IMG/VR virus record: IMGVR_UViG_3300037297_000066
Span: 186,001 to 250,000 of that record
Strand: one strand, 5' to 3'
Length of the DNA: 64,000 bases
Under the pieces are notes generated by a model that worked only from the letters and a program-made list of their open reading frames with translations, had not been told where the DNA came from and made no database searches. A program made the position numbers and the translations under genes. Below, piece after piece: positions 1 through 14,655 of the stretch. Numbering within the stretch: position 1 is the stretch's first letter; every line of letters begins with the position of its first letter.

Positions 1-518
1 TCGTACCCCAGAAAGTTCAGAATAGCTCGGGTGATGTCGTCTTGAAGGAAGCTCCGGCCTTGAGCGACTCGAAACTGGAGCTCCTCCGGTGAAAGCAAGT
101 GGCTCCCGGCCAACGCTAGCCTCTGGTACACCGCAACGTCCCACTCACCATCATCAGGACGGTACCACGTAGCCGCAGCGCCCAAGAAGTACTCCCCTAA
201 CCTAGAGCCCCCGTGGAATGCCTCCTCAACCGCCTCCACCAAATGCACGTACCGGGCCCCCGGCTCGCCTCGGAAGGGCCCCTCATAGGAAGGCCCCGAC
301 TCCTTCCTCGACAGCGCTTCCATGATGAAAGGCGTTAGAGGGATCGGGATCTGACTTAGATCCTGAGGGATCTCCCTTCCGCTGGAAGTGACCGCCCACA
401 CAGTGAAGACCCCTCCCTTTGGAACCACTTGGATCTCGTACCAGGAAGTCGAATCCTCGCTCTCGGCTACCCTGTACATATCCGTTCCCACCAGCTTGCT
501 GGAAGCGACGATCTTCAT
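1..518 (-). CDS. Array paralogue 1 (3' end outside window)
   Basis: ATG at 518 overlaps stop of 515..1039 (ATGA); MKIVASS...IPIPLTPFIMEAL...LGEY...FRVAQGRSFLQDDITRAI matches family motifs. Confidence 0.85.
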   Translation of the reverse strand, partial: MKIVASSKLVGTDMYRVAESEDSTSWYEIQVVPKGGVFTVWAVTSSGREIPQDLSQIPIPLTPFIMEALSRKESGPSYEGPFRGEPGARYVHLVEAVEEAFHGGSRLGEYFLGAAATWYRPDDGEWDVAVYQRLALAGSHLLSPEELQFRVAQGRSFLQDDITRAILNFLGY

Positions 519-1039
519 GCCTGCCCCCGAGCCCTACTCACCACCTCCACAATGGCTCGGGTGATAGCCTCTGGAGAGTAGGCGTTTTCATGAGACCGAC
601 GTAATTGCCGTTCTTGCTCCGTCAAGTCTAGATGGTAATGGCTGACAACGTATTGGTACACCTCAGGATCCCAATCAGAATCACTGGGGTAGTGCCACCT
701 TTCCGCAGCCAAGTAACCCCCCAAGTTGTGCCAGAGCTCCACCTCCCTCTCAACCACACTCACCAACAGGTCGTAGCCATACTCAGGACCCTGAGGGTCT
801 CCTTGGAAGACCCCCTGGTAAGGCCCAAGCTCCCCTTTCGACAAGCTCAGAGCTTCCAGAATGGAGGGCAGCAGGAACAACGGTATAGCCCCAATCCGGA
901 CAGGAGAGCCCCCCTCAAGGACCTCGTAGAGATACACCACCATCCCCACCCGGATCTGGTAGCTAACCCGAGAGGCTCTGCTCTCAGCCACCGTGTAGGT
1001 GTCTAAGCCCTCCACGGTCTCAACGCCAATGAGCTTCAC
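515..1039 (-). CDS. Array paralogue 2
   Basis: IPLFLLPSILEAL, LGGY, YSPEAITRAIVEV. Confidence 0.85.
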   Translation of the reverse strand: MKLIGVETVEGLDTYTVAESRASRVSYQIRVGMVVYLYEVLEGGSPVRIGAIPLFLLPSILEALSLSKGELGPYQGVFQGDPQGPEYGYDLLVSVVEREVELWHNLGGYLAAERWHYPSDSDWDPEVYQYVVSHYHLDLTEQERQLRRSHENAYSPEAITRAIVEVVSRARGQA

Positions 1040-1599
1040 GGTTCAGGCTCCCGTAGCCGTGTCACCACCTCCACCACAGCCCGGGTGATGCTTTCCTGAC
1101 CGTACGTCTTACCCCTTATCAACCGAAACCGACACTCCCCGTTGGTAAGTCGGTACATATCGTTGTTCACCACATAGAGGTATTGACTTCGAGTCCAGTC
1201 CGACCTCCGAGGGTTGACCCAGTTGTTGACAGTGCGAGAATGCCGGTAGGTACCAAGGCCGCTCGATCTCGACTGAGCAAAAGCCGCCTCCACTTGCCCG
1301 ACTAACCTTTTGTAACTCGCAGAACGATCCCCAGGCTCCTCCCCAAAGGACCCCACACAAGGGACCTGCTCGCCCCGGGTGGCCTCCAGGATGAACGGAG
1401 TCAGAAAGATCGGAATCGAGTTCAACCGGATTGGGTGCCCTTCCAAAGACGCCCAGTGCCACACCTGGTAGGACCCTCGCCCTCTTTCAGGGCCATCGGT
1501 CCGATAGACACGGATCTCGTAGCCCTCAGACTCAGACTCATCAACGGCTACCCGATAAGTGTCGAGACCGTCTTGCCTGTGCTTCCCAATGAAATGCAT
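1036..1599 (-). CDS. Array paralogue 3
   Basis: IPIFLTPFILEA, LGTY, YGQESITRAVVEV; class-B promoter upstream. Confidence 0.85.
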   Translation of the reverse strand: MHFIGKHRQDGLDTYRVAVDESESEGYEIRVYRTDGPERGRGSYQVWHWASLEGHPIRLNSIPIFLTPFILEATRGEQVPCVGSFGEEPGDRSASYKRLVGQVEAAFAQSRSSGLGTYRHSRTVNNWVNPRRSDWTRSQYLYVVNNDMYRLTNGECRFRLIRGKTYGQESITRAVVEVVTRLREPEP

Positions 1600-1604
1600 C
1601 CATC

Positions 1605-2162
1605 CTACCGTACACCAAGAGACGCCCCAAACCGCCGACTAAGTACCTCCAGGACCGCTTGGGTGATCTCCGCTTGAGTGAACCGCATCCCCAGTCGAAG
1701 CCGAAACTGAACCTCTTCAGCTGTGAAAAAGTACCCCTCACTCATCGCTACCCCCCGGTAAGCCTCCTCACTCCACCCAACCTGGCCCGGCTCATACCAA
1801 TCCCCCTCAAACGTTCGGTAACTCCCCAACGCAACACCACTAGACTCACTCTCTTCCTCGATCATTTGAACCAGGGCAGCGTAGTCGGAGCTCCCCCCAC
1901 CCTCCCTAAAAGGGCCCTCCCCACACGGGGCAGGCTCAGCAGCCAACAACTGCAAAATGAACGTAACTAGTCCCTCGGGTAGCCAGTCTGCCGCCCCGAA
2001 GAAACGATTCCCACTCCGACGTTGAAGCACATCGAAATGCCTTCCTCCTTCTGAGCCCTTACGGCGAACCAAGATCTTGTAGGCAGTGGTGCCCGGCCCC
2101 TCCGAGACCTCACAAACCATCACGTGACCGCTGTTATTGAACTCGGTGATCCCAAAGCCCAC
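1605..2162 (-). CDS. Array paralogue 4
   Basis: GTG 2162 follows upstream stop; LGSY, FRLRLGMRFTQAEITQAVLEV. Confidence 0.8.
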   Translation of the reverse strand: MGFGITEFNNSGHVMVCEVSEGPGTTAYKILVRRKGSEGGRHFDVLQRRSGNRFFGAADWLPEGLVTFILQLLAAEPAPCGEGPFREGGGSSDYAALVQMIEEESESSGVALGSYRTFEGDWYEPGQVGWSEEAYRGVAMSEGYFFTAEEVQFRLRLGMRFTQAEITQAVLEVLSRRFGASLGVR

Positions 2163-2166
2163 TACC

Positions 2167-2775
2167 TTACTCCCTACTGCGACGCTCGTACAACACGTCC
2201 AAAACAGCCTGGGCAATGTCCTCACGACTGTAGCCGTCCTGGTACGCAGTGGCATAGAAATTCAGCTCATCCGGCCGAAGCTGAACCGGGGGCCGCAGTG
2301 CCTCAAAGTAACCAGCCTGAGACCAATCAGGGTCGGAAAACATAACCCACCCACCCCCACGCCTGGGATACGCCCCCGTCACAGTCCCCACACTGACAGA
2401 CCTGTGCGCCCACAACCTCAAGTGCTCAAGGTCGAGATCGTTAGCATCGTACCCTGACTCACTACCATCCTCGTAGTCCCAGGCAGGCTCCCCTCTCCAC
2501 ACACCCTCAGGAATAGTGCCCTCCGGCACTCCCCCAGCCTCCTGACAAACCCAAAGGATCGATGTGAGCAGGCTCATGGGCCAAAACAGCTCCAACTCCC
2601 ACCCTTGGGGGGCCAACCGACGGATTTGAACCACCGGGGAACTCTTCGGGTCAACCTGAACCTCAACCCGGTACCTGCAGCTCGTGTCCTCGGACCACAC
2701 CACCTCACGTTGGTAGATCTGAGTGGCCCCCTCCTGCCTCGTGGAATCTCGTCCAGCGACTACAATCCAGGTCAC
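2167..2775 (-). CDS. Array paralogue 5
   Basis: GAY, W..P.W, YSREDIAQAVLDV. Confidence 0.8.
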   Translation of the reverse strand: MTWIVVAGRDSTRQEGATQIYQREVVWSEDTSCRYRVEVQVDPKSSPVVQIRRLAPQGWELELFWPMSLLTSILWVCQEAGGVPEGTIPEGVWRGEPAWDYEDGSESGYDANDLDLEHLRLWAHRSVSVGTVTGAYPRRGGGWVMFSDPDWSQAGYFEALRPPVQLRPDELNFYATAYQDGYSREDIAQAVLDVLYERRSRE

Positions 2776-3350
2776 TGACGCCCCCTACCGTGGCTCATCA
2801 AGCGTGCCTCAGTTTCCCGGAAGACCCGTATCCGAACCCGGTCACCAACGAAAGGCCCCTGACGAGTCAGCACGGCCACCCGAAACATACCCCGGTCCAA
2901 AACCCGGACCCATGCGTGGAAGAAGCCAGCATCGTTCACCCACATCGCTCGAACAATCCCGTAGAACTCTTGATACTCACGCCCACGAGCATCCACAAGG
3001 TAGTTTACTCCCTCCTCCCACTCGACGTGGCTCCCTAATGACTCACGCACCAGCGGCTCCTCCTCTACCCCCTGAACAGCCTGAGGGTCGGAAAACGCTC
3101 CCATCTGGTCCGGCCTACGAACCTCCGAGAACGCCTTCATGATGAAGGGCAACAACTTCTCTGGGATGGTATGAAGCACAATGCGGCGCCAGCTCATGTC
3201 CTGATCTTGAACGTAGACCTCGAATTGGTACGGGTGATGGATCTGGGTGGGAGAGTAAACCCACAGCTCGTACCGGGGCCAACCCTCCAGAGTCTCACCG
3301 ATCACGTAGACCGTTTTGACCCCCTCACACTGGGTGTCGAGAATATGCAC
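2772..3350 (-). CDS. Array paralogue 6 (family N-domain, different C-terminus)
   Basis: MHILDT..VYVIGE..IPEKLLPFIMKAF..GAF; lacks the QEEITRA tail. Confidence 0.75.
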   Translation of the reverse strand: MHILDTQCEGVKTVYVIGETLEGWPRYELWVYSPTQIHHPYQFEVYVQDQDMSWRRIVLHTIPEKLLPFIMKAFSEVRRPDQMGAFSDPQAVQGVEEEPLVRESLGSHVEWEEGVNYLVDARGREYQEFYGIVRAMWVNDAGFFHAWVRVLDRGMFRVAVLTRQGPFVGDRVRIRVFRETEARLMSHGRGRQ

Positions 3351-4186
3351 TAGAACGGAACCTGCCTGTCGTGGATCGCCTGAATCACAGCCTCAGTGAT
3401 AGCCTCTTGGCCGTAGGCAGGTTCATGCTCATGCCTAAACCTACGCTCACCTCCGCTCAAAAAGATAGGGAGTATCTGGACCGTGCGCCGGTACTCACCA
3501 GGATCCCAAAGGATATTCCAAGCCGACATGAACTCCCCATCAACCAGAAGATAGTTTCCTAACCTCTGGCCTTCGTTCAAGGCCCTCTCAACCAACGCCC
3601 CCAATCGAACGGGGGGCTCAGTCTGAACAACAGGCTCGGGAATACGAGACGCCCCCACCACTTCCAAGATCGCTTCCGTGATCTCATCCTGGCTGAACAC
3701 CCTCCCATGGTCCCGCCGAAAACACTCCTCGGGAATGTCCGAGGCTCCTACACCATGCGTGTAAGCGTTCCGGTACTCAGCCTCATCCCAGTCGGAATCT
3801 CTAATCCCGTGCCAGACCTCGTCGGCATAATAACCCCCCAAATCCACCCCCCTCTCCAGGGCCTCACCCACCCGGTCCCTCAGGTAGGACAAGGCCCGAT
3901 CCAATGAGGCGGTGTGGCCCACCGGTTCCTGAAAGAGCTCTTCCTGGCAAGAAGTAGGCTGGCTCAGAGCTTGTAGGATGAACGGCACCAAGAAGAGAGG
4001 CACCATGTCGATCGGCTGAGAAACCCCTCTAACCGTAGCTCGATGACGCACCTGGTATGCATCCCCTTCCTCCGCAGGATCCAAAGGAGGAACTACCCAG
4101 ATCTCATACCAAGAAACAGAGTCCTCCCGCTCGGCCACTTTGAAGGCTTTCCCCTTGACGAGCTTCTGCAGCGGGATGAACAACAT
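3350..4186 (-). CDS. Array paralogue 7, duplicated C-domain
   Basis: FSQDEITEAILEV and YGQEAITEAVIQA; leaderless start after GGTGTATGGT. Confidence 0.85.
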   Translation of the reverse strand: MLFIPLQKLVKGKAFKVAEREDSVSWYEIWVVPPLDPAEEGDAYQVRHRATVRGVSQPIDMVPLFLVPFILQALSQPTSCQEELFQEPVGHTASLDRALSYLRDRVGEALERGVDLGGYYADEVWHGIRDSDWDEAEYRNAYTHGVGASDIPEECFRRDHGRVFSQDEITEAILEVVGASRIPEPVVQTEPPVRLGALVERALNEGQRLGNYLLVDGEFMSAWNILWDPGEYRRTVQILPIFLSGGERRFRHEHEPAYGQEAITEAVIQAIHDRQVPF

Positions 4187-4207
4187 GCCCTCACCATACA
4201 CCACAGG

Positions 4208-4756
4208 TCAAATCCCCATTCGCCTCAAAACCCTCAGGATGGCCTGCGTGATCTCATCCTGAAAGAAACTCCGACCCCACATGATCCGAAACCGGAGCTC
4301 ATCCAGGGAGGGATTATCACCGGCATCCTCAACCGTCTCCCGGTACTCGTCAGCGTCCCACCCCTCATCACCAGGAAAGAACCAGTCCCCTTGAAGGGAG
4401 CCCGTAGGATAGGCCCCCAAGGCAAGATCATCCTCTCCCAAAGCCCTCTCTACAGCTGTCTCCAAAGCGGACTCTGAAGTAACTTCCCCGCTGGAAGCCT
4501 CACCCCCGAAAGGCCCCTCTTTTACCGAAACACGCTCCCACTCCAACACCTGGAGCGCAAATGGTACCAAGCAGGCCGGAAGCCCCTTCAGAGGGACAAC
4601 CTGCCCATACCGTAACTGCTTGGCCGCATGTACCCGTAGACTGGTCTCGCTCTCAGCCGGACGAACCATCAGGTGGTACGGACCAGCGTCACCCTCTTCC
4701 TCCCCAATGAGGTAAACCCTACCTTGATGGGAGTGCTCAACCCCGATGATCTTCAT
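4208..4756 (-). CDS. Array paralogue 8
   Basis: LGAY, FRIMWGRSFFQDEITQAI. Confidence 0.85.
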   Translation of the reverse strand: MKIIGVEHSHQGRVYLIGEEEGDAGPYHLMVRPAESETSLRVHAAKQLRYGQVVPLKGLPACLVPFALQVLEWERVSVKEGPFGGEASSGEVTSESALETAVERALGEDDLALGAYPTGSLQGDWFFPGDEGWDADEYRETVEDAGDNPSLDELRFRIMWGRSFFQDEITQAILRVLRRMGI

Positions 4757-5343
4757 GTGTCCAAAAAGCTCCGAAGAATTTCGTCTATGACGGCCATAAT
4801 AGCCCGGGTGATCTCCTCCTGCGTAAACCGAGCCCCCTGAGTGAGCCGGAATACCACCTCCTCAGAGCTGAGCTGAGAGGGTCGCTCTCTCACAACCGCC
4901 AGGTACTCCTGGAGCTCCCACTGGGGAACCGTAAACCTAACCCATATAGGAGGCCCCATCCCGATCCGGTTGGAGTTGGAATAAGCCCCAAGCCACTGTC
5001 CCTGATGTATAACCTGAGCCACCTCGTGCCTCAATGCCCCCACATCAGGTGTGTAGTCCTCAGGCTCATCCCCAAACGCTCCCCCCTTGGGTAATCCGGA
5101 CCTCAACCCAAAATTGGTCACCTGCAGGATGAACGGGACGAGAAAGCTGGGAACCACTCCCAGGCGGTTAGGGGGACCCCCAGCGCCATTCTGATGAAAG
5201 ACCGCAAAGTGCTCCCTGTCACCCCCAGGGTTGTACACCCGGATCACGTAGACGTAGGGAGACTCATCATCCTCCGTTACCTTGTAGACAGCCGGGTTGA
5301 ACCCCGTCTCGGTGCCTTTACGCTCGGTACTGAGTATCCTCAC
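4753..5343 (-). CDS. Array paralogue 9
   Basis: GTG 6 nt after GGTGTATGGT; FRLTQGARFTQEEITRAI. Confidence 0.85.
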   Translation of the reverse strand: MRILSTERKGTETGFNPAVYKVTEDDESPYVYVIRVYNPGGDREHFAVFHQNGAGGPPNRLGVVPSFLVPFILQVTNFGLRSGLPKGGAFGDEPEDYTPDVGALRHEVAQVIHQGQWLGAYSNSNRIGMGPPIWVRFTVPQWELQEYLAVVRERPSQLSSEEVVFRLTQGARFTQEEITRAIMAVIDEILRSFLDT

Positions 5344-5362
5344 TCCCCCACCATACACCAAA

Positions 5363-5923
5363 TCACCCCGGGCCCCGCCATTTCCCCACCACCTCCACAA
5401 TGGCTCGGGTGATCTCGTCTTGATTGAAGGTCCGGCCCCACTCTAACCGAAACCGGATCTCAGCCGAGGAACTCTCCTCCCCCCAGTTGATTACACGCTC
5501 TCGGTACTCATCAGGATCCCACTCTGGATCCTGATGATTGCGTCGTACCATCCAGCCGTCCTGCCGGGTGGTATCACGTATGTAATAGGACCCTAAATCT
5601 ACCCTATCCAAAACCCCCCTAACCGCCTCCAGGAGCTCCGAGTAGTCCCGGGTGGCCCATCCCTTAGCTTCCTCCCCAAACGCTCCCACAGGGGCAGTAG
5701 GGGGCCCTCCAAGCGCTTCCAGGATGAAGGGCAGCAAAAAGGACGGAGTCCGTTCTAGTTTTACACTGGGACCACCCCGAGAGTTACGACGGTAGGTAGC
5801 AAAGTGAGCCCCCATGGACGAACGAAGCACCTCAATCCGATAGGTCTCTTCAGATGCCTCGTCCTCGGCCAGAACATACAAAGTCGTGTCCCTACTCGGG
5901 AGCACCTCGATGATCCGCATCAC
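5363..5923 (-). CDS. Array paralogue 10
   Basis: LGSY, FRLEWGRTFNQDEITRAIVEV; close to paralogue 12. Confidence 0.85.
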   Translation of the reverse strand: MMRIIEVLPSRDTTLYVLAEDEASEETYRIEVLRSSMGAHFATYRRNSRGGPSVKLERTPSFLLPFILEALGGPPTAPVGAFGEEAKGWATRDYSELLEAVRGVLDRVDLGSYYIRDTTRQDGWMVRRNHQDPEWDPDEYRERVINWGEESSSAEIRFRLEWGRTFNQDEITRAIVEVVGKWRGPG

Positions 5924-5929
5924 TCTCCC

Positions 5930-6727
5930 CTACCTGGCACGACCCAGCAGCCCCTGCACCACCAAGTCGGTGATCAATGCCTGGCTATGCCCAAAGCCGT
6001 TTTCACTGCGGAACTGACGCTCCTCCCGAGTCAGATTGTGGGTAAAATAGGTGGCTGTGTGCCGATACCGCTCAGCATCCCAGACAGCATCCTCAGGGTA
6101 AGTCCACACCCCCTCATTATCGCTCGGGTAGGCCCCCAAAGGCACACCCTCGTTCAAAGCGTCGAAAACCCGGGTTCGGAGCGGGGCCTCCTGCCCAGAT
6201 CCTTCAGAATTAGGCCCACGAGCCTGAGCCTGCTCCAGCACAACCTCCACAACCGCCTCCGTAATGGCCTCCTGGGTTAACATCTGGCCGGGGTGGAGCC
6301 TAAATTGGATCTCATTGTCAGCAAGATGGTAGCCCTCGTTCAAACTCACACGCCGGTACTCGTTGGCATCCCACCTGGGATTGCTGGGCATTATCCACCC
6401 AGAATCAGGAGGCCCGGTCTGATAGGTCCCAAAACCAACACCTGTGTCCCTGATCAACCGAACCAGATCCGAAGGGTCCCCCGAAAGGGACTCCCCCGAG
6501 AACTCACTCCCCACCCGAGCCCGAGTGGAAACCACTTCCAGAATGAACGGAAGCAAAGCCACCGGGATGGTCTGGAGCCTTACACAGTCCTCCCGCTCGC
6601 AACGGTAGATCTCTAAAAAGCTGTTTTCCTGATAAAAACATAGCTCGTATTTCGGCCGGCAATCCGGACCCTCCCCAATCACGTAGATCTTAGAAGTCCC
6701 CCTTCGCCTGGTGTCGAGTATCCTCAC
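5930..6727 (-). CDS. Array paralogue 11, duplicated C-domain
   Basis: TQEAITEAVVEV and HSQALITDLVV; leaderless GTG. Confidence 0.85.
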   Translation of the reverse strand: MRILDTRRRGTSKIYVIGEGPDCRPKYELCFYQENSFLEIYRCEREDCVRLQTIPVALLPFILEVVSTRARVGSEFSGESLSGDPSDLVRLIRDTGVGFGTYQTGPPDSGWIMPSNPRWDANEYRRVSLNEGYHLADNEIQFRLHPGQMLTQEAITEAVVEVVLEQAQARGPNSEGSGQEAPLRTRVFDALNEGVPLGAYPSDNEGVWTYPEDAVWDAERYRHTATYFTHNLTREERQFRSENGFGHSQALITDLVVQGLLGRAR

Positions 6728-6746
6728 TCCCCCACCATACACCGAC

Positions 6747-7619
6747 TTACCCCGGGCTCGAACCAGAGTCCGTGCCCCCAATAATCCCGCTCTCCCGCAA
6801 CTCCTCCACCACAGCCCGGGTGATGGCCTCACTCCCATAGCTCGAAATAGCACCCCTGAACCGTCGCTCCCCTTCGCTCAAATCTACGTTGGAATGACGG
6901 GCCACCCGCTCATAAACCTCAGATACCCAGCACACCATCTCAGGGGTAACCCATTGACCGTTCAGAGATAGATAGGACCCTAGGGATACCCCAGAGCTCA
7001 AAGCTTCACTCACCCTGGCCCTCAACATCCCAAGGGAAGGCGCCTCCTCCACACTCCTATCCCTCCACCGGGGCTCAGCCAGTACCTCCACAATGGCCCG
7101 AGTGATCTCATCCTGGCCAAAGGTCCGGCCCCACAAAAGTCGGAACTCTAGCTCCTCAGGTGAAAGCTCGGCCCCAGACTCGGAAACATAGTCTAGGTAC
7201 TCTGCCTCGTCCCACCCAGGATCGTCCCTGTAGCGAAACGTATACCCCGGTCGCTGCTCTGGCCTAGGAACCGGATAGCTCCCAAGGTAAGGGCCCTCCT
7301 CCAAAGCTGCTCTCGCTACCTCCAAAAGCTCCTGGTAGTCGTGGGTGACCCAACCCCTAGGCTCTTCCCCAAACGCCCCAGTCGGGAACCCGAAGCCATC
7401 CCCGAGCACCTGAAGCACACAAGGCATCAGGAAGGAAGGGACATGCTCCATTTTCACACTGGGACCCCCACGGGCCTGACGGCAGTAGACAGCGAAGTAA
7501 AGCGTTCCCCTCGCACCCCTCATTACCTCAATCCGATAGGTCTCCTCAGACTCCTCGTCCTCAGCCAGTCTGTAGTGGGTCCTATTCTCACCCCGGATGG
7601 TGTCGATGACCCGTAGCAT
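6747..7619 (-). CDS. Array paralogue 12, duplicated C-domain
   Basis: FGQDEITRAIVEV and YGSEAITRAVVEE; leaderless ATG. Confidence 0.85.
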   Translation of the reverse strand: MLRVIDTIRGENRTHYRLAEDEESEETYRIEVMRGARGTLYFAVYCRQARGGPSVKMEHVPSFLMPCVLQVLGDGFGFPTGAFGEEPRGWVTHDYQELLEVARAALEEGPYLGSYPVPRPEQRPGYTFRYRDDPGWDEAEYLDYVSESGAELSPEELEFRLLWGRTFGQDEITRAIVEVLAEPRWRDRSVEEAPSLGMLRARVSEALSSGVSLGSYLSLNGQWVTPEMVCWVSEVYERVARHSNVDLSEGERRFRGAISSYGSEAITRAVVEELRESGIIGGTDSGSSPG

Positions 7620-7641
7620 GCCCCCACCATACACCAGAACC

Positions 7642-8190
7642 TCAGGGGAACGTCCCCACTCGCTCCCCCAAGAGCAGGAGAACCTCCCGGGTGATCTCCT
7701 CCTGCGTAAACCGAGCCCCATGGCGAAGCCGAAACCGAACCTCCTCCGGCGTGAGTAGATTCCCCCAATACTGAACTACCCTCTCGTACTCCTCAGAATC
7801 CCACCCCTCACGCCCGGGCTCGGACCACCCCCCTCCATGGACCCTCTGGTAGCTCCCTAGCTCTACCCCCACCTCCTGGAAAAACTCCTCAACCAGCTGG
7901 GCCAGAGAGTCCGGGCCCTCAGGAGCGTCTAGAAATGGGCCCTCATAAGCCCCAGGGTCCTCCCCCATGGCCTGTAGGACAAAAGGCACCAGTCTGAATG
8001 GAACGGCCTTCAACTCTACCCACGCAACCCCAAAATCGCTCCGATAGTAGATGTGGACAAACCCGAGCTCCTGAGTGGAAGGGGCCGGACGTACCCAAAT
8101 CCGAAACAGAATGGGAGAACCCTCGCTCTCCCCTACCGTGTGGACGAAAGTCAGGTCCTCAGACCGCTGCTCGACCTTGAGAATGCGCAC
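7642..8190 (-). CDS. Array paralogue 13
   Basis: FRLRHGARFTQEEITREV; leaderless GTG. Confidence 0.85.
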   Translation of the reverse strand: MRILKVEQRSEDLTFVHTVGESEGSPILFRIWVRPAPSTQELGFVHIYYRSDFGVAWVELKAVPFRLVPFVLQAMGEDPGAYEGPFLDAPEGPDSLAQLVEEFFQEVGVELGSYQRVHGGGWSEPGREGWDSEEYERVVQYWGNLLTPEEVRFRLRHGARFTQEEITREVLLLLGERVGTFP

Positions 8191-8225
8191 CCCTTCACCA
8201 TACACGAGCACACCCCCACTCCTCC

Positions 8226-8267
8226 AGGGGGAAGAACCCTTGCGGGATGAGAAGAGTCCTTCCCCCT
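8226..8267 (-). repeat. Hairpin E copy 1 (16-bp stem, loop CTCATCCCGC)
   Basis: Fully paired on minus strand with G-U pairs; same loop as 9295-9336. Confidence 0.7.
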
Positions 8268-8307
8268 CCAACTTGACCCTTTAACCCAAACCTGTGAGAA
8301 TTGGCCC

Positions 8308-8514
8308 ATGGCCCCAAAACCTGACCTGGCCTCAGTCTTCAAGGCGCTAGACGCTCACGACCTGCCCTTCCTGTCCAATATGGGCCAAAGCACCGCCCAC
8401 CTCCTGGACGAGAATAACCCCAACGGGGTGGTCGTCCTCCGGGATGAGAGAGGAAATGACCGCCTCTACATGCCCCGTAGCGTCTGGGATGAGCTACGAG
8501 CTGGCAGATGCTAG
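8308..8514 (+). CDS. Hypothetical protein
   Basis: 68-aa ORF filling the gap, opposite to the array. Confidence 0.55.
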   Translation: MAPKPDLASVFKALDAHDLPFLSNMGQSTAHLLDENNPNGVVVLRDERGNDRLYMPRSVWDELRAGRC

Positions 8515-8829
8515 CGAGTTCAGAATCTCTGCCACAATGGCATCGGAGATCTCCTCCTGGTCGTAATACCGCCCCCAAACAAAGCGGAACTGAAGTTCAC
8601 CATCTAGCAATAGACTGGGAGCCTCTGCAACCGTGTCCAGATAGTCAACTAAACTCCACCCACCCGTAGCTGGAGTCACCAGGGGGAAGTCTTCCCCTTC
8701 CCCCTCAGATCCATAGAACTGACCAAGCTCTACCCCATTTTCCAAGGCTTGTTTCACCGAAGCCTGAAGATCCCCATCAAGAGTCGTGTCAATAGAGTCA
8801 TCAAACGGACCCTTAGGCAAAACCAGCAT
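8494..8829 (-). CDS. Array paralogue 14 (C-domain only)
   Basis: GPF, LGQFY, FRFVWGRYYDQEEISDAI. Confidence 0.8.
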   Translation of the reverse strand: MLVLPKGPFDDSIDTTLDGDLQASVKQALENGVELGQFYGSEGEGEDFPLVTPATGGWSLVDYLDTVAEAPSLLLDGELQFRFVWGRYYDQEEISDAIVAEILNSLASASS

Positions 8830-9245
8830 CAGTGGTCCGTAAGGGCCCGCTTGAGCCCCTGGTACAACGCCTCTACCCTCGGCCAGTTCAACCCCATCAA
8901 GGGAACCTTCAGTTGAGCAGTCCCCACCCGGACCTTCACACCCTCACTGTCGGCTATGACCAGTGAAAGATGCTTCGGGTCCCAGCACAACCATACGGGT
9001 CGCCCCAAACGCTCCAGAGCCCCCTCCACATCACAAAAGGGTAGCTTGTCGTCATCTACGACCGTCCCCCGATACTCGATGCCCAGTAGCTGAGCTAGTA
9101 CCTCCCCCAGCCCCGTAGAACGGCCCTTTCCCCATACCTCGTCCCGGTAGGTCTCGTAGACCACCCCGAAAGCTTCCGGGGGCTCAGCCCTCTTCCAACC
9201 CTCCTGGGTCGGTACGTAGACCTTTGTGTCGTCTCGGATGCCCAT
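8829..9245 (-). CDS. Hypothetical protein
   Basis: ATG 6 nt after GGTGTACAGT. Confidence 0.75.
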   Translation of the reverse strand: MGIRDDTKVYVPTQEGWKRAEPPEAFGVVYETYRDEVWGKGRSTGLGEVLAQLLGIEYRGTVVDDDKLPFCDVEGALERLGRPVWLCWDPKHLSLVIADSEGVKVRVGTAQLKVPLMGLNWPRVEALYQGLKRALTDH

Positions 9246-9294
9246 GGCCTGACTGTACACCACAAGAGAGCTCCCCCGAAAGGGCTCAGGCCCA

Positions 9295-9336
9295 AGGGAG
9301 AAGATTCCTTGCGGGATGAGAAGGTTCCTTCCCCCC
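9295..9336 (-). repeat. Hairpin E copy 2
   Basis: Same 10-nt loop, stem sequence differs but still pairs. Confidence 0.7.
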
Positions 9337-9421
9337 TCACACCCCTCCCCCCATGGGGATGGCCCGGCGTAGCCCCGCCACCCCCCACAGAACTTAGCTA
9401 GGTAAGGGCTGTGAGCGGCCC
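9336..9421 (-). ncRNA. Candidate structured element related to 17347-17492
   Basis: Shares CTCACA/TGTGAG outer stem, GTTCT(C)GTGGGGG(G)TGGCGGGGC and CCCATGG. Confidence 0.4.
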
Positions 9422-9651
9422 CCAAGGCCCGCTTCCTTCTTAGCTACCTCGATTACCTCAAGTACTAGCATTCGAAGGAGTACTTGAGACGTGGGAGGAA
9501 AATGGCCGATGAGCTCTTGGACACCCTCCAAACAAGCCCTCTGAAGCTCCCCCACTGATACTCCTTGGCGAAGCCCCACGCTGAGCTGTCGAGCTAGATC
9601 CATGAACATGGCTGTGTCTTTCTCTACCTGCTCTTCTTTCGAGATGGACAT
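9394..9651 (-). CDS. Hypothetical protein
   Basis: ATG 6 nt after GGTGTACGGT. Confidence 0.7.
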   Translation of the reverse strand: MSISKEEQVEKDTAMFMDLARQLSVGLRQGVSVGELQRACLEGVQELIGHFPPTSQVLLRMLVLEVIEVAKKEAGLGGRSQPLPS

Positions 9652-9699
9652 ACCCTCACCGTACACCAGCCTCCTGAGCCCCCTACTAGGTTTTCTTTG

Positions 9700-10320
9700 G
9701 GAGGCCCCTCCCCCAAAAGGTCCCCCAGGGAGGGGTTGGGGCCTATGTAGGCGTATTCTCTCAGGGTTTCGGGGAGGCGTAAAAATCCTGCGGACAAAAA
9801 GGCCGGACATTTCGTGATGAAGAATCTTAGGGAGGTTTTGTACGTAAAGCCGTCTTTTCCCGGGGTTTTTGGATATACCGGCTCATTGGCCGAATCCGGC
9901 CCATGGGCAAAGCAACGATCAGGCCAAGGCACAGCTTTGAGATTCTGTCAATATTATTCGACTCCGGCCCTACGAATCATTGGTCATACCGGCCCACGGG
10001 TCATTTTAGGGCCGGGGCCCGGGGCTTCGCCGGGGCCGACGGCTGGAGGTTGCCCTGTTGGGGGGAGGGCCGGGGAATGGCGGAATCGAAGCAAGGAATT
10101 GACAACTCCCTATTTGGAAGATCCGGAATTTGGAAATCCCTAAGTTGGGCATTGCCGAATTACAAAATGCACAATCCCACCGCCGGCCCCTGGTGGGGGG
10201 AACCGAGGTGGGATCAGGTAGACAAAAAGGTGAGCGGCCCGGCCCTGGGCGTGGGGGGGAAACGCCTCTGGGGCCAGACCGCTCTGGAGCCTCGACAGTA
10301 GATCGGGCAGGTCGCCTTGT
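9700..10320. other. Non-coding region with 7 CCGGCCC heptamers and A/T tracts (origin or terminus candidate)
   Basis: No convincing ORF; heptamers at 9896, 9964, 9989, 10009(-), 10067(-), 10183, 10239. Confidence 0.4.
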
Positions 10321-10326
10321 CCAGAC

Positions 10327-10378
10327 AAAACGACTGACCCCCTCCAGACACAGCAGCCAATGAGGGGGTCATAGTCGT
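10327..10378 (-). terminator. Intrinsic terminator-like hairpin
   Basis: ACGACT-AT-GACCCCCTC...GAGGGGGTC-AGTCGT followed by TTT on the minus strand. Confidence 0.65.
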
Positions 10379-10452
10379 ACGCAGAGACTCGATTATAGTG
10401 CTACTCGATAGGGCCTCCGTTCCTTGATGGTTGTAGGGTTGTTGTTACGCTC

Positions 10453-10686
10453 TCAGGAGAAGAAGTTGGTCTCGGTCCGGTCGTCGTACTGGTCCACGGC
10501 CTGGGCCCGGTACTTGCCGTCCGCACACAGGAACACTCGGCAGTAGGTCCCGAAGAGGATTCGGAACCCCCGGTACTTCTCGGTTCCGTCCGTGGTGTAC
10601 TCGTCGTCCAACCAATCGGTCTGGGGGCCAGTTCTCCAGCGGTTTCCGGTGTTCAGCTTGAAGCAGTGTTCGGCGTGGTGAGTCAT
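10453..10686 (-). CDS. Hypothetical protein (class-A cassette)
   Basis: ATG 6 nt after motif A. Confidence 0.8.
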   Translation of the reverse strand: MTHHAEHCFKLNTGNRWRTGPQTDWLDDEYTTDGTEKYRGFRILFGTYCRVFLCADGKYRAQAVDQYDDRTETNFFS

Positions 10687-10692
10687 GTCTCT

Positions 10693-10721
10693 ATTACACG
10701 TGAGAGGGTTGGATCTTAACC
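10693..10721 (-). promoter_or_regulatory. Class-A promoter 1
   Basis: GGTTAAGATC-N12-GTGTAAT, ATG after 6 nt. Confidence 0.8.
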
Positions 10722-10735
10722 CGGGCTCCTCGGAA

Positions 10736-11059
10736 TCAGTACGCCTCGGCCCAGCCGCCACACTTGGGGCACCGGATACGCTGACCGGGCCGGTAGCCGA
10801 AGGACAGGAGGTCCTCGCAGGCACCGCACTGGCACTCCCCGTTGCTGCTGCGTCGGGGCCGGGGGCTGCTGGTGCCCTTCGAGGATTCGGTCTGGACCAG
10901 GGTCACCTTGCCGTCGGTCCAGAGGACACGTTGCACTGTGGCTGTCCAGGTCTTGCCGGCCTTGGTGTTGATCTCGATGATGGCGCCTTGTTGAACTGAA
11001 CCCTGAACTCGGGCACCCCAGGAGCCGTCACGGAGCTTGGAGGGAGTTGCTTTCGTCAT
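10736..11059 (-). CDS. Small protein with Cys-rich Zn-binding C-terminus
   Basis: CQCGAC..CPKCG; motif A start. Confidence 0.8.
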   Translation of the reverse strand: MTKATPSKLRDGSWGARVQGSVQQGAIIEINTKAGKTWTATVQRVLWTDGKVTLVQTESSKGTSSPRPRRSSNGECQCGACEDLLSFGYRPGQRIRCPKCGGWAEAY

Positions 11060-11065
11060 GCCCTT

Positions 11066-11094
11066 ATTACACGTGAGGGGCTCCGATCTTAACC
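11066..11094 (-). promoter_or_regulatory. Class-A promoter 2
   Basis: Motif A, ATG after 6 nt. Confidence 0.8.
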
Positions 11095-11125
11095 CGGGCC
11101 CCTTTCAAAAAATCAGAGACGGCTG

Positions 11126-11154
11126 GGTTAAGATCCAACCCTCTCAGGTGTAGT
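11126..11154 (+). promoter_or_regulatory. Class-A promoter 3
   Basis: Motif A, ATG after 6 nt. Confidence 0.8.
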
Positions 11155-11160
11155 GAGATC

Positions 11161-11361
11161 ATGGCATACCCGTACAACAACTGGGCCATCAAGCACGACG
11201 AACTAGGATTCTACGACGGCACCCTCCACGGGAAGCCCTGGTTTGGGGCGGACCAGTATGACGCCCACGGCTACCGGACCCGGAAGGATGCCCAGGCTGT
11301 GATAGACGGGGACCCCGAAGGGTTCAAGAACGCCCGGCCAGTGAACCTGAAGAAGTTGTAG
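11161..11361 (+). CDS. Hypothetical protein (class-A cassette)
   Basis: Motif A start. Confidence 0.8.
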   Translation: MAYPYNNWAIKHDELGFYDGTLHGKPWFGADQYDAHGYRTRKDAQAVIDGDPEGFKNARPVNLKKL

Positions 11362-11524
11362 AGGGAAGCCCTGCTACGGCTCTGCCCAGAGCCTCCCCTA
11401 GGCTACCCTCAGGGAACAGGTCAGCAGCCCAGGCTCCTGCCTCTTGAATCTCAGCTCGAAGGCGACGCTTCCCAGCTGGGGTTCTGAGGTAGGCGGCCAG
11501 GGCCTGTTCTTCTTGTGGAGTCAT
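11324..11524 (-). CDS. Hypothetical protein
   Basis: MTPQEEQALAAYLRTPAGKRRL; last gene of a minus-strand operon. Confidence 0.6.
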   Translation of the reverse strand: MTPQEEQALAAYLRTPAGKRRLRAEIQEAGAWAADLFPEGSLGEALGRAVAGLPSTTSSGSLAGRS

Positions 11525-11530
11525 CTCGAC

Positions 11531-11578
11531 CCAGAGTAGGCCCCCAGGGAGGGGCTGTCTACTCCCTGGGGGCTCTGG
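11531..11578. terminator. Strong intergenic hairpin
   Basis: CCCCCAGGGAG/CTCCCTGGGGG 11-bp stem plus CCAGAG/CTCTGG. Confidence 0.55.
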
Positions 11579-11806
11579 TCAGATGTTGCGAATCAGGGCG
11601 TCCCGGCCCTTTCCAGTGGCAGCGTAGTGCCCCCTGGGGCCCCGGTGCACCCAGAGCTTCTTAGCCATCCTCAGGAGGGTAAGGGAGGCCCAGGCTGAGG
11701 CTGTCTGGGGAGGCTTGCCCCCGACGTCGATGCCCACCCGGGTGGGGGAGACGTAGCCGCCTTCGGCCACGAGATAGCCCAGGATGGCTTCTTCTTTGGA
11801 GGTCAT
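11579..11806 (-). CDS. Winged-helix-like DNA-binding protein
   Basis: AILGYL..SPTRVG..L.RM.K..V...RGHYAAT.KG. Confidence 0.65.
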   Translation of the reverse strand: MTSKEEAILGYLVAEGGYVSPTRVGIDVGGKPPQTASAWASLTLLRMAKKLWVHRGPRGHYAATGKGRDALIRNI

Positions 11807-12057
11807 GCGGCCTTCTTCTGGGACCGTTCCCGGCATTTCTTGAGTTGAGAGAGGATTGACTTGCCCTCCTCGGAGACTTCGTAGCGACGGCCGTGTTGGT
11901 CCACCAACCCGTGCCGAACCAACTTCTGGAGGGGAGAGGCGGCCCAGAGGGGGGCGATGCTATGGTGATGGTTACCGACCAAAACCCCGATCTTCGTGAG
12001 GGAGGTGGGGCCCCTGCGGGCCAGGAAGGCTAGGATCGATTCCTGTCGGAGGGTCAT
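11803..12057 (-). CDS. Winged-helix-like protein, paralogue of 11579
   Basis: SILAFL..LQKLVRHGLV..RRYEVSEEG. Confidence 0.65.
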   Translation of the reverse strand: MTLRQESILAFLARRGPTSLTKIGVLVGNHHHSIAPLWAASPLQKLVRHGLVDQHGRRYEVSEEGKSILSQLKKCRERSQKKAA

Positions 12058-12263
12058 CAGATCCTCACAATGGAGTCAGGGGCCACTCCGAAGTGGTCCA
12101 AGAGCCACTCTTCGGCCGTGTTCCTTCGGAGCTCGAAGGACAGGACGACCTCTCTGTTGCCCCCCACGATGTTGCTGGGCATGTCTGTGTGCAGGTAGAC
12201 CCGATCGACGCCCATCTTGTCGTAGACGACGTTGACCCGGGTGACTTGGAAGTGAGGAGTCAT
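12057..12263 (-). CDS. Hypothetical protein
   Basis: SD GAAAGGA upstream; downstream of class-A promoter 4. Confidence 0.75.
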   Translation of the reverse strand: MTPHFQVTRVNVVYDKMGVDRVYLHTDMPSNIVGGNREVVLSFELRRNTAEEWLLDHFGVAPDSIVRI

Positions 12264-12294
12264 TGGGTTCCTTTCAGGTGTGGAGCCTACTTCT

Positions 12295-12323
12295 ACTACA
12301 CGTGAGGGGGCTGGATCTTAACC
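12295..12323 (-). promoter_or_regulatory. Class-A promoter 4 (leadered)
   Basis: Motif A followed by about 25-nt leader with SD. Confidence 0.75.
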
Positions 12324-12324
12324 C

Positions 12325-12525
12325 TCACCGGAAGGTAACACTCCGACGCCTCTTGCACTCGACCAGAAGGCCCGCTGCCGACAGCTTCCGGAGGTAGCGG
12401 ATGGCCACCTCTCGGGAGGGGAGGCCCAAGGCTCTCCTGGCATCATGAGCCGTGAAGGGCCTGTCCGGGTAGACGCCTCGGAGGAAGTCAGCGTTCCGGG
12501 CGTCGTCCTGGGTTACCTTGGCCAT
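12325..12525 (-). CDS. Small HTH-like protein
   Basis: FTAHDARRALGLPS..RYLRKLSAAGLL; motif A start. Confidence 0.7.
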   Translation of the reverse strand: MAKVTQDDARNADFLRGVYPDRPFTAHDARRALGLPSREVAIRYLRKLSAAGLLVECKRRRSVTFR

Positions 12526-12531
12526 GCCCTT

Positions 12532-12560
12532 ATTACACGTGAGGGGGTTGGATCTTAACC
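12532..12560 (-). promoter_or_regulatory. Class-A promoter 5
   Basis: Motif A, ATG after 6 nt. Confidence 0.8.
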
Positions 12561-12577
12561 CTGATCGGAGAGAGGGG

Positions 12578-12769
12578 TCAGTCCTTCACGACCCGGGGCA
12601 TCATGCGAGCGGTAGCCCCGTACCTTCGGGCACGCTCGTTGGCCTGTTCTAGGGTGAGGCCCCGAGCTGAGATGTAGTGAGGCTCGCCCCCGATTCGGAC
12701 CTCCACGTGGTAGGTGGGCTCCTTGGGCTCCTCGGGGGAGATGTTCTTGGAAGTGTTGTCGGTTGCCAT
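12578..12769 (-). CDS. TYHVE..RGLTL..VVKD family protein
   Basis: Paralogue of 12940 and 13887; motif A start. Confidence 0.8.
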   Translation of the reverse strand: MATDNTSKNISPEEPKEPTYHVEVRIGGEPHYISARGLTLEQANERARRYGATARMMPRVVKD

Positions 12770-12775
12770 GCCCCT

Positions 12776-12804
12776 ATTACACGTGAGGGGGTTGGATCTT
12801 AACC
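12776..12804 (-). promoter_or_regulatory. Class-A promoter 6
   Basis: Motif A; perfect 12-bp hairpin GACCCCCGGGAG just upstream. Confidence 0.8.
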
Positions 12805-12906
12805 CTGAACGTAGTGACCCCCGGGAGTTTCTGAGGCTCCCGGGGGTCGGGGTTCGGAGTTCTAACAGATATACCCCACCATACACCGGAGCTCAGGGTT
12901 TGGAGC

Positions 12907-12943
12907 CAGGTTTTTTGAGGGGTCAGGTTTTTTGAGGGGTCAG
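12907..12943. repeat. 17-bp tandem duplication CAGGTTTTTTGAGGGGT
   Basis: Two adjacent copies at the gene end. Confidence 0.7.
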
Positions 12944-13263
12944 TCCTTCACGACCCAAGCTTTCATGGGATGGTACTTCTGAGCCCACCTCTGGGCCTCT
13001 TCGAGAGTACGCCCCCGAGGGGACACGACGACAGGGTAACTCCTCACATGGATCTCCACGTGAAAGGTGGGCTCTGGAGTGGGGTTCTTCTTGGCTTCCC
13101 ACCGGGCCAGGACGGCCTGGCACCGGGTGCAGTTGACGTGCTCCTTGGCGGACGTGGTGCTGTGAGCTCGTCGGTTCCCACACACGGGCCTTCCTCCCCC
13201 GGTTTGGGAGAAGTGCATCACGAGGCCCTTGCGGGTCTTTTTGCTGGGGGTGCCGGTTGCCAT
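12940..13263 (-). CDS. Zn-finger + VVKD family protein
   Basis: H..CG..CTRC then TFHVE..RGRTLEEA..VVKD. Confidence 0.8.
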   Translation of the reverse strand: MATGTPSKKTRKGLVMHFSQTGGGRPVCGNRRAHSTTSAKEHVNCTRCQAVLARWEAKKNPTPEPTFHVEIHVRSYPVVVSPRGRTLEEAQRWAQKYHPMKAWVVKD

Positions 13264-13269
13264 GCCCCT

Positions 13270-13298
13270 ATTACACGTGAGGGGGGCCGATCTTAACC
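13270..13298 (-). promoter_or_regulatory. Class-A promoter 7
   Basis: Motif A, ATG after 6 nt. Confidence 0.8.
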
Positions 13299-13432
13299 CG
13301 GCCCGTGGGTATAAAAACAGGCCCGACCCGAGACCCGAAGCACCCATAACTCCCCGTATGGGGGCCTCGGATCGGGGGAAAAACGGGGTGAATTTTCGAC
13401 CGGGGTTCGATATCAGAAATAGCCTGGCCCGG

Positions 13433-13461
13433 GGTTAAGATCCGAGGCTCCCAGGTGTATT
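13433..13461 (+). promoter_or_regulatory. Class-A promoter 8
   Basis: Motif A variant (GTGTATT), ATG after 6 nt. Confidence 0.75.
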
Positions 13462-13467
13462 AGGGGC

Positions 13468-13593
13468 ATGAGCAAGAAGACGATGGTCACCCTGGCTTGT
13501 TGGATGCTCGCCCTGGCAACCTCGTCTGCTCAGACACCCCCCAAGGCCCGGACAGTGGAGCTCGAAGCCACCCTGGTTCAGGCCACCCTGTGA
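13468..13593 (+). CDS. 41-aa signal-peptide-like protein (not in ORF track)
   Basis: MSKKTMVTLACWMLALATSSAQ...; motif A start. Confidence 0.65.
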   Translation: MSKKTMVTLACWMLALATSSAQTPPKARTVELEATLVQATL

Positions 13594-13601
13594 GGACCCC
13601 C

Positions 13602-13835
13602 ATGAACGCCTACCTGATTCACAAGGACAAGATGGCCCGGATCGCCTTCCCCGATGACGCCCCTTCCGAGGTAGTGGACCGGATCAAGCGGGCCGTGGCC
13701 TCCCACATGACCCACCCCGATGGGATCCGACGCCCGGAGATGAGGGTGTGTGGGTGCCGGGTCTACTGGGCCTCCCCACTGTACTACTCGGACGTCCCCT
13801 CGGACCGCATCGAGTCGGCCTCGGACTACGTCTGA
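13602..13835 (+). CDS. Hypothetical protein
   Basis: GAGG SD before MNAYLIH. Confidence 0.7.
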   Translation: MNAYLIHKDKMARIAFPDDAPSEVVDRIKRAVASHMTHPDGIRRPEMRVCGCRVYWASPLYYSDVPSDRIESASDYV

Positions 13836-13851
13836 GAATCGCTCCTCTCCG

Positions 13852-13880
13852 GGTTAAGATCCAACCCTCTCAGGTGTAGT
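13852..13880 (+). promoter_or_regulatory. Class-A promoter 9
   Basis: Identical to copies 3, 10, 11. Confidence 0.8.
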
Positions 13881-13886
13881 GAGATC

Positions 13887-14362: not shown

Positions 14363-14374
14363 GCCCCCTCTCCG

Positions 14375-14403
14375 GGTTAAGATCCAACCCTCTCAGGTGT
14401 AGT
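14375..14403 (+). promoter_or_regulatory. Class-A promoter 10
   Basis: Motif A, ATG after 6 nt. Confidence 0.8.
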
Positions 14404-14409
14404 GAGATC

Positions 14410-14637: not shown

Positions 14638-14655
14638 GCAGAAATCGTAGGCCCG

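Follow-up and report, generated by a model that had tools for sequence, protein, structure and literature searches.

Large expansions of paralogous genes are known in giant eukaryotic viruses, where they are linked to host range and immune evasion, but are rare in phages. The MGF360/505/110 families of African swine fever virus (ASFV) and the ankyrin/PRANC and Bcl-2-like families of poxviruses are host-range and immune-evasion factors, and the amplification of K3L in poxviruses is a genomic accordion. The internal proteins IPI-III of phage T4 share a capsid-targeting sequence of about 10 residues that is cleaved, with at least one member acting against a restriction system, and phiKZ-like phages possess paralogous inner-body proteins. 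In bacteria, poly-immunity loci are arrays of paralogous immunity proteins (SUKH/Imm). A lineage-specific zinc-ribbon expansion of about 35 copies in the Bacillus jumbo phage G was called 'unprecedented' (Iyer et al. 2021, PMC7824862), and segmental amplification of tifA in T4 against toxIN is among the observations reported by Srikant et al. (2022, PMC9391042). Our analysis concerned a stretch of 64,000 nucleotides, in the following called the window, which covers positions 186,001 to 250,000 of the 437,331-bp contig IMGVR_UViG_3300037297_000066, identified as its source by an IMG/VR scan and by protein homology search (window position x is contig position 186,000 + x). Window positions 1-8829 hold one end of a tandem array of about 50 paralogous genes. 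Our data leave hardly any doubt that these genes form a very large, old, and lineage-restricted family of non-catalytic two-domain proteins that is modular and subject to ongoing birth-and-death turnover.

Although the phenomenon has precedents, this array differs from them by its two unrecognised domains, the number of copies, tight packing, and documented exchange of cassettes and domains between co-occurring strains. As in phage G, one small-domain family has been multiplied tens of times in a very large phage genome, and its function is guessed. In contrast to phage G, the proteins have two domains and no zinc ribbon, several lack any cysteine, they are acidic and not DNA-binding-like, their genes lie in one contiguous co-oriented block, and turnover is documented at the strain level. 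The families of ASFV and poxviruses likewise consist of diverged tandem paralogues without catalytic residues and with strain-variable copy content, but here a bacterial host is expected, the folds are unrelated, and the genes are polycistronic and overlapping. A block of this copy number that takes up about 10% of a 437-kb genome and is reshuffled between co-occurring strains would rank among the largest phage multigene families described.

An initial annotation of the window had proposed at least 14 divergent paralogues within positions 1-8829. All 14 open reading frames (ORFs) proved to be real members, but the size of the family was understated. In all-vs-all BLASTP comparisons the 14 members matched each other with E-values of 1e-5 to 1e-56, and a hidden Markov model (HMM) derived from alignment A1 scored every one of them at 1e-27 to 1e-80; the alignment is statistically significant. 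A MAFFT consensus of the 14 proteins reproduced the N-domain and C-domain motifs that had been read from the sequence. In the ORF listing with trimmed starts all 14 genes are located on the minus strand, and 6 of the 13 gene junctions are overlaps of 1-4 nt (ATGA, GTGA, TAGTG, TGATG), in agreement with the description of co-oriented and frequently overlapping genes. The array was also correctly expected to continue past the left edge of the window. A leftward walk via the overlapping loci L004, L005, L006, and L012, which were assembled without conflict, and iteration of the HMM over contig positions 150,394-250,000 yielded 50 family ORFs at E<1e-4, all on the minus strand, between contig positions 152,461 and 194,829. 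A few weaker ORFs with only the N-domain reach to about contig position 152,046. The block thus spans about 43 kb (contig 152.0-194.8 kb), of which another 34 kb or so lie beyond the left window edge; other genes interrupt it over a single stretch of 6 kb, and small ORFs are scattered through it. HMM search of window positions 8830-64000 revealed no family member, and window positions 1-8829 are the promoter-proximal end of the block.

The full unit of N- and C-domain is present in 41 of the 50 copies. The remaining ones either consist of a C-domain or an N-domain alone, join the N-domain to a different module, or have a degenerate N-domain; one is a C-terminal remnant of 55 aa. The unusual domain organisations that had been noted within the window were all recovered by HMM domain matches and strain comparison. 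A second C-domain, detected as a separate HMM domain match (E ~1e-16), follows the first in the products of 3350-4186 (278 aa), 5930-6727 (265 aa), and 6747-7619 (290 aa), whereas 8494-8829 (111 aa) encodes only the C-domain. In 2772-3350 the family N-domain (residues 1-98) is joined to an unrelated beta-rich C-terminal half that has no paralogue within 100 kb, the replacement breakpoint lying in the linker at about 3056-3057. A frameshift as the cause of this odd C-terminus was dismissed, as tblastn with the canonical orthologue found no match in an alternative frame at this place. Since a related strain joins the same N-domain (90-96% identical) to a canonical C-domain, it represents a true replacement. 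The other members in the window have the N+C organisation. These are 3-518 (start ATG overlapping the upstream stop in ATGA; 3'-end beyond the left window edge, 178 aa when complete in L002/L004), 515-1039 (174 aa; GTGA overlap with the upstream gene), 1036-1599 (187 aa), 1605-2162 (185 aa; GTG start 4 nt after the upstream stop), the divergent 2167-2775 (202 aa; GTGA overlap), 4208-4756 (182 aa; ATGA overlap with the upstream gene), 4753-5343 (196 aa), 5363-5920 (185 aa), and 7642-8190 (182 aa).

Only the last ~38 positions of the C-domain are matched by the 55-aa ORF (window about -1803 to -1639; contig 184197-184361; L004:5870-6034), which represents what is left of an array unit after decay or recombination. 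Scattered through the array are also the genes of a second, smaller protein family with lengths of about 100-137 aa (contig 161973-162299, 165765-166067, and 167690-168100). Its members match each other in BLASTP with E-values of 1e-5 to 1e-10, and it also occurs beside array genes in the more distant contig L009 (3339-4267).

Six members had been assigned promoters of their own, of a type termed class B. The six starts at 1599, 4186, 5343, 6727, 7619, and 8190 indeed lie 4-6 nt past TGTATGGTG or TGTACGGTA. The corresponding minus-strand elements are TGGTGTACGGTAGGATGG at 1600-1618, directly before the ATG at 1599 (gene 1036-1599, with the class-B-like motif TGTACGGTAGGATGG before its start), TGTATGGTGAGGG at 4188-4200, 6 nt before the ATG of 3350-4186, TGTATGGTGGGGG at 5345-5357 (within a 19-nt intergenic gap), 6729-6741, and 7621-7633, and TGTATGGTGAAGG at 8192-8204; the genes 4753-5343, 5930-6727, and 7642-8190 start with GTG. 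The class-B motif TGGTGTATGGTG matches 32 times in the window compared to 5.1 expected matches, a number reached by none of 100 shuffles. Over a 100-kb region it is mostly found immediately before ATG or GTG on either strand, often in divergent palindromic pairs. Because it is over-represented and precedes starts on both strands, it represents the general promoter-like element of this genome. The TATGGT core would fit a -10 box of the TANNNT type, the spacing of 4-6 nt to the start suggests leaderless transcripts, and the runs of overlapping or closely spaced starts and stops suggest translational coupling. Together with the choice of start codons, this promoter style may point to an actinobacterium-like host. 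Scans of window positions 1-11000 for standard sigma-70 promoters and intrinsic terminators gave no more hits than shuffled sequence. Palindromic class-B pairs (CACCATACACC-N4-6-GGTGTATGGTG) between divergent genes at window positions 27040-27105, 51574-51607, and 54601-54634 look like compact bidirectional promoters.

Copy content in related phages, a check proposed together with the initial annotation, differs between close strains by loss and gain of units and by replacement of cassettes and domains. The compared strains are 94-96% identical to the window DNA. Their contigs are metagenome assemblies in which chimerism at repeats is possible, but the same breakpoints recur in independent samples (L007, L010, X3). 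Strain L010 lacks the C-only gene 8494-8829 and one whole unit just left of the window, and carries different cassettes at 4184-3902 and 3057-2023. In L007 an additional 91-aa gene and a very different family member are inserted between the orthologues of 4208-4756 and 3350-4186, and 2167-2775, 1605-2162, and 515-1039 are absent. Its orthologue of 2772-3350 combines an N-domain of 90% identity with a canonical C-domain, the breakpoint being located in the linker at about window position 3056. This hybrid did not result from a simple deletion between 2772-3350 and 1605-2162, its C-domain being only about 30-50% identical to either. Contigs from public sequencing runs were compared over window positions 1-6000. 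Among these, the sediment strain X3 showed the same breakpoint at 3057 and no cover from about 2000 to 3056, a stretch that includes 2167-2775. A joint 531->1058 in one X2 contig excises exactly the gene 515-1039, while X2 also has the gene-containing form; the ends of this joint fall into conserved 'ITRA(I/V)VEVV' coding stretches of neighbouring copies. Short near-identical DNA stretches are shared by the paralogues at their C-terminal motifs. The observed breakpoints point to unequal homologous recombination at conserved junctions as the likely mechanism of this turnover.

The age of the copies distinguishes this array from a recent genomic accordion. Pairwise identity among paralogues averages 23% and reaches a maximum of 53% for 5363-5920 and its closest paralogue 6747-7619, and similarity is only weakly related to adjacency (Spearman -0.08, p ~0.06). 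Orthologues are retained between strains, and a more distant relative (L011) also has an array. Given this divergence, the retained orthologues, and the array in the distant relative, the expansion is old and was maintained by birth-and-death. The accordion-style expansion postulated initially therefore holds with respect to recombinational gain and loss of units between strains, but not with respect to recent amplification: near-identical copies were not found, and the units gained or lost are themselves old and diverged. As in the K3L and tifA accordions, which stand in a counter-defence context, copy number changes via recombination between repeats, but those amplifications are recent, near-identical, and transient, whereas the present copies are old and stably inherited. 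The array has the features of a viral multigene family evolving by birth-and-death, namely tandem paralogues that have diverged, a content that varies between strains, and selection that is purifying but relaxed. A tree of the C-domains showed regional grouping and placed the three second C-domains in one clade (support 0.89). Thus, the N-C-C form arose once and was then duplicated; independent internal duplications as its origin were ruled out by this clade.

Selection was analysed by comparing the window genes with their L010 orthologues. For 12 pooled array genes dS was 0.092 and dN 0.041 (dN/dS 0.45; 206 non-synonymous to 139 synonymous changes), compared to dS 0.139 and dN 0.022 (dN/dS 0.15; 22.5 to 43.5) for 5 adjacent non-family genes, a small baseline of 467 codons. 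The counts of array and flanks differed significantly (Fisher p=1.3e-4). By domain, dN/dS was 0.49 in both the N-domain and the linker, and 0.33 in the C-domain. Hence, the family proteins evolve about three times faster than their neighbours, yet under net purifying selection, and the diversifying selection assumed in the initial annotation was not borne out, although positive selection at a subset of sites is possible. The raised dN/dS below 1 would also be expected if the copies were mostly dispensable duplicates under relaxed drift, in which case the array would have arisen as a side effect of repeats prone to recombination, in a very large genome under little compaction pressure. Copies that are lost singly without obvious replacement, the 55-aa remnant ORF, and several copies with truncated or degenerate N-domains fit this explanation as well. 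However, about 50 frames have stayed open although the copies have diverged to 23% identity, none of the copies has lost the scaffold residues, a Trp and a Tyr being invariant in 47 C-domains, values of 0.33-0.49 still indicate purifying selection, and orthologues are kept across strains as is the array in the more distant relative. We therefore regard drift of dispensable copies as decidedly unlikely.

The AlphaFold2 model of the protein encoded by 5363-5920 (mean pLDDT 85.4) contains an N-domain of four strands (residues 2-8, 12-18, 26-34, and 37-45) followed by a helix (60-70), a linker of low confidence (75-89), and a C-domain with a helix (93-104), a beta-hairpin (112-126), and three further helices (136-149, 152-161, and 167-182). 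The modelled C-domain topology is alpha-beta-beta-alpha-alpha-alpha. The C-only protein, modelled with 47 aligned C-domains (alignment A3), reached a pLDDT of 87.8 and a pTM of 0.77. Across 41 full-length copies Tyr19, Pro51, Leu54, Phe73, Gly102, Tyr104, Trp126, Tyr131, Glu146, Arg150, and Thr163 are at least 85% conserved. In the 47 C-domains, besides the invariant Trp and Tyr, a Gly, a Tyr, a Glu, and an Arg are conserved to at least 90%. Motifs among the well-conserved positions are LGxY, W-x4-Y, E-x3-R, and ITxAI, with one Glu/Arg pair; the remaining positions vary freely. The alignment of the copies contains no conserved His, Cys, Ser, Asp, or Lys constellation suggesting catalysis. As the conserved positions are aromatic, Pro, Gly, or aliphatic apart from the Glu/Arg pair, the proteins look like scaffolds without catalytic activity whose surfaces vary. 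An acidic pI between 4.05 and 5.3 was obtained for 12 of the 14 members in the window (4.6-5.3 for those with an N-domain, 4.05 for the C-only protein), the exceptions being 2772-3350 (5.99) and 1036-1599 (8.95). Inspection of the window members by eye revealed no hydrophobic or signal-like N-terminal segment. We infer that the family consists of soluble intracellular, presumably cytoplasmic, binding proteins with diversified surfaces, in which the Phe of the conserved G-x-F at the start of the otherwise disordered linker and the strongly conserved IPxFLxPFIL helix may be common interaction elements.

A conserved N-terminal module followed by variable C-terminal parts, at a locus that varies between related phages, is also typical of the T4 internal proteins. 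The family proteins might accordingly be virion-internal or ejected, with the N-domain or the G-x-F targeting them to the capsid and the variable C-terminal modules acting after injection. The N-domain is indeed the more constant module and is fused to another part in 2772-3350; several ORFs in the distal part of the array carry it alone or with a different module, as do at least 6 proteins of L011. Furthermore, the proteins are small and acidic, and the locus is hyperplastic between strains. In contrast to T4, however, what the copies share is a folded domain of about 70 residues accompanied by a second conserved domain, and there are tens of copies. Fifty packaged protein species would be extreme, the C-only members lack the supposed targeting module, and Pfam and PHROGs scans of the window revealed no protease-site pattern, head gene, or other structural gene near the array. 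A location inside the virion is thus rather unlikely.

No sequence or structure library assigned the family to a known family, let alone to one with a routine role, and its initial description as unrecognised stands. The Pfam-A scan gave no hit at threshold, with no HTH, Imm, or SUKH family at E<=1, and profile searches of PHROGs v4, NCBIfam 20, and PADLOC 2.0 yielded no family above threshold. Across these four libraries there were only single sub-threshold chance matches (RsgA_N 0.038, UBA_2 0.27, DUF1830 0.026). The A1 profile searched against PDB sequences gave a best E-value of 0.5 (criterion: hmmsearch E<=1e-3). Foldseek searches with the whole-protein model resulted in a best E-value of 0.17 with TM<=0.41 in the PDB (criterion: E<=1e-3 with TM>=0.5) and of 0.011 in BFVD (criterion: E<=1e-3), and the C-domain model with pLDDT 87.8 reached at best E 2.2 and a probability of 0.07 in the PDB, with no winged-helix or HTH neighbour. 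A few BFVD hits of this whole-protein model were to small phage proteins that are uncharacterised; they extend over about 60 residues within the N-domain only (TM 0.5, E 0.03-0.2) and may serve as a lead but are not a match. Several further leads were discarded. A thioredoxin-like/Redoxin hit in the ESM Atlas (0.93) shared only 134 features, which is in the chance range, and has no Pfam match; a thioredoxin fold would call for the order beta-alpha-beta-alpha-beta-beta-alpha and a CxxC or peroxidatic Cys, at odds with the modelled topology. DsbA, the top Foldseek match of the C-domain, superimposed with an rmsd of 10.8 and a TM of 0.23, again with the wrong topology, and the C-only member lacks Cys. 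The ESM Atlas leads DUF6618, DUF3910, and Imm74 for the N-domain scored in the noise range of 0.61-0.75. Judged from the models, the two domains may be new folds.

A profile search of 1.84 billion representative proteins returned only 63 matches, of which 18 belong to this genome, about 24 are orthologues from close strains (70-96% identical), and about 22 are distant copies. Every contig fetched for a match has family genes in co-oriented runs (L001, L007, L009). Five distant matches share one 27-kb contig, of which 16 kb were fetched (L011, GC 62.6%); this part encodes no fewer than 11 complete members, besides at least 6 proteins in which the N-domain stands alone or is joined to other sequence. 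Hence, the family matches no sequence family or fold of the libraries searched and is restricted to one phage lineage.

The layout of the array, tandem small, diverged, non-catalytic, and acidic alpha+beta proteins, is a hallmark of bacterial SUKH/Imm loci, whose products the family may also resemble as binders. It was therefore considered as a poly-immunity-like locus that neutralises diverse toxins or effectors of competing phages or bacteria. Unlike at such loci, there is no Pfam sequence match to Imm or SUKH at the E-value limit given above, no toxin gene is adjacent, and the element is a phage genome, listed as viral. With Imm74 at 0.61, that is, at noise level, as the lead in this direction, we consider a poly-immunity function very unlikely.

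Adaptors or regulators of the phage's own processes are a further alternative. The copies could be transcription or replication factors, or adaptors for partners such as the HslV-family peptidase encoded in the window, and their expansion would then reflect regulatory complexity rather than conflict with the host. In the models a helix-turn-helix-like unit might be formed by the three C-terminal helices of the C-domain, and the zinc-ribbon expansion of phage G has been proposed to provide transcription factors (PMC7824862). Nevertheless, the acidic pI argues against DNA binding, neither the HTH families of Pfam nor the winged-helix and HTH structures accessible to Foldseek were matched, and presence/absence variation between 95%-identical strains is unexpected for core regulators. 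Such a role appears quite improbable.

In other large viruses, host-interaction and counter-defence families are marked by the same combination of features as this array: a content that differs between strains, raised dN/dS, a fixed scaffold whose surfaces vary, acidity, and confinement to one clade. For this reason we favour the reading that the copies are diversified binders which act on host targets, either in counter-defence or in host takeover. It is a tentative reading, to which we give a little less than even weight; the anti-defence or host-binding role expected in the initial annotation is plausible. The genes would be expressed in coupled runs punctuated by the general promoter-like motif TGGTGTATGGTG, as leaderless transcripts. 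Recombination between the conserved 3' coding motifs of adjacent copies probably adds and removes whole units, and cassettes and C-terminal modules are exchanged. Each copy would bind a different partner in the host cell, and a broad repertoire would be kept as hosts differ. The family is a concrete and manageable source of candidates for new activities in host interaction or counter-defence, and perhaps for new folds, and the array is a natural system for studying how very large phages use extra coding capacity.

Several observations weigh against this reading. Small, acidic, non-catalytic proteins could equally be virion-internal proteins or assembly factors. No copy resembled a PADLOC model or, in Pfam and PHROGs, which hold several anti-defence families, a known anti-defence protein. 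The dN/dS ratio is below 1 in every domain, and relaxed constraint explains the excess over the flanks equally well, with no need for an arms race. The promoter type is general in this genome and gives no indication of early expression. Finally, the viral status of the contig itself is suggested by its IMG/VR listing and the PHROG-type content of the window.

A more specific variant, which we consider rather improbable, is that of a modular repertoire. The N-domain with its IPxFLxPFIL helix and the G-x-F would dock all copies at one and the same place, for instance a protease, a hub protein of the host, or the inside of the capsid, and the exchangeable C-terminal modules (canonical C, doubled C, or unrelated) would confer dozens of specificities. 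The array would then be an adaptor library built on two unseen folds and kept diverse by junction recombination.

DNA of this genome was detected in wetland and marine-sediment metagenomes. Comparison of the DNA with 50,697 phage records, in near and distant modes, gave no match and thus no similar cultured phage, and tblastn of two large window proteins against the same records yielded nothing useful. Outside the array the window consists of densely packed small ORFs. Among its 94 ORFs 11 Pfam families were matched, including R2K ATP-grasp, ADP-ribosylglycohydrolase (61313-62380, minus strand, E 6e-70), nucleoside hydrolase, here of the inosine-uridine type (49711-50613, plus strand, E 6e-21), an AAA_33/KTI12-type P-loop, Fis-type HTH, and S24 peptidase. 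The 22 PHROG families matched include RNA ligase, HslV-like peptidase, and polynucleotide kinase, the last probably being the same ORF as the AAA_33/KTI12-type P-loop. Judged by these matches, the gene content appears jumbo-phage-like with typical conflict and repair genes. An Rfam scan of the whole window at gathering thresholds found no tRNA and no other RNA family. ARAGORN predicted a 101-nt tRNA-Gly(GCC) at 29528-29628 on the plus strand, which lacks Rfam support and is probably either spurious or a very unusual tRNA containing an intron.

A cluster of small genes with a second promoter-like repeat adjoins the head of the array. This repeat, GGGTTAAGATC-N10/11-CA(C/G)GTGTA(G/A)T-N6/7-ATG, occurs in about 15 copies on both strands within 5.5 kb (window 10668-16094); examples are 13245-13299, 13844-13892, and 14367-14415. 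Every copy is located directly before the ATG of a tiny ORF. It probably corresponds to the 'class A' of the initial annotation, and the block looks like a set of small genes under separate temporal control. A stretch of 484 nt in this region (11095-11579) is missing in L010, with 13 nt in its place; thus, the class-A block is also strain-variable. A 41-nt element, GGGGGAAGGA(C/A)(T/C)CTTCTCATCCCGCAAGG(G/A)(T/A)TCTTC(C/T)CCC, is present on the minus strand at 8226-8266 and 9295-9335 (2 copies, 0 expected) and also in L001. Both copies are located upstream of class-B motifs, the distance being about 20 nt to the motif ending at 8204 and about 45 nt to the start region of gene 8829-9245. The element could fold into a stem of about 16 bp, the fold z-score of -0.8 being not significant in this G-rich context; it may function as an operator or insulator, or else as a U-less terminator.

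G is strongly enriched on the coding strand of the array. GC skew flips near window position 10000, from about -0.21 in the first 10 kb to positive values of +0.13 to +0.21 at 16-24 kb, and this flip coincides with a change in the direction of transcription. The array has a single sizeable gap (8191-8493), in which a 68-aa ORF lies on the opposite strand (8308-8514, plus strand). A promoter-like site TTGACC-17-GAGAAT ends 7 nt before its ATG. Compared to L010, 7 of 11 substitutions in this ORF affect the third codon position and none the first, and 58 of 62 residues of the protein are identical, so that it probably represents a real small antisense-oriented gene.

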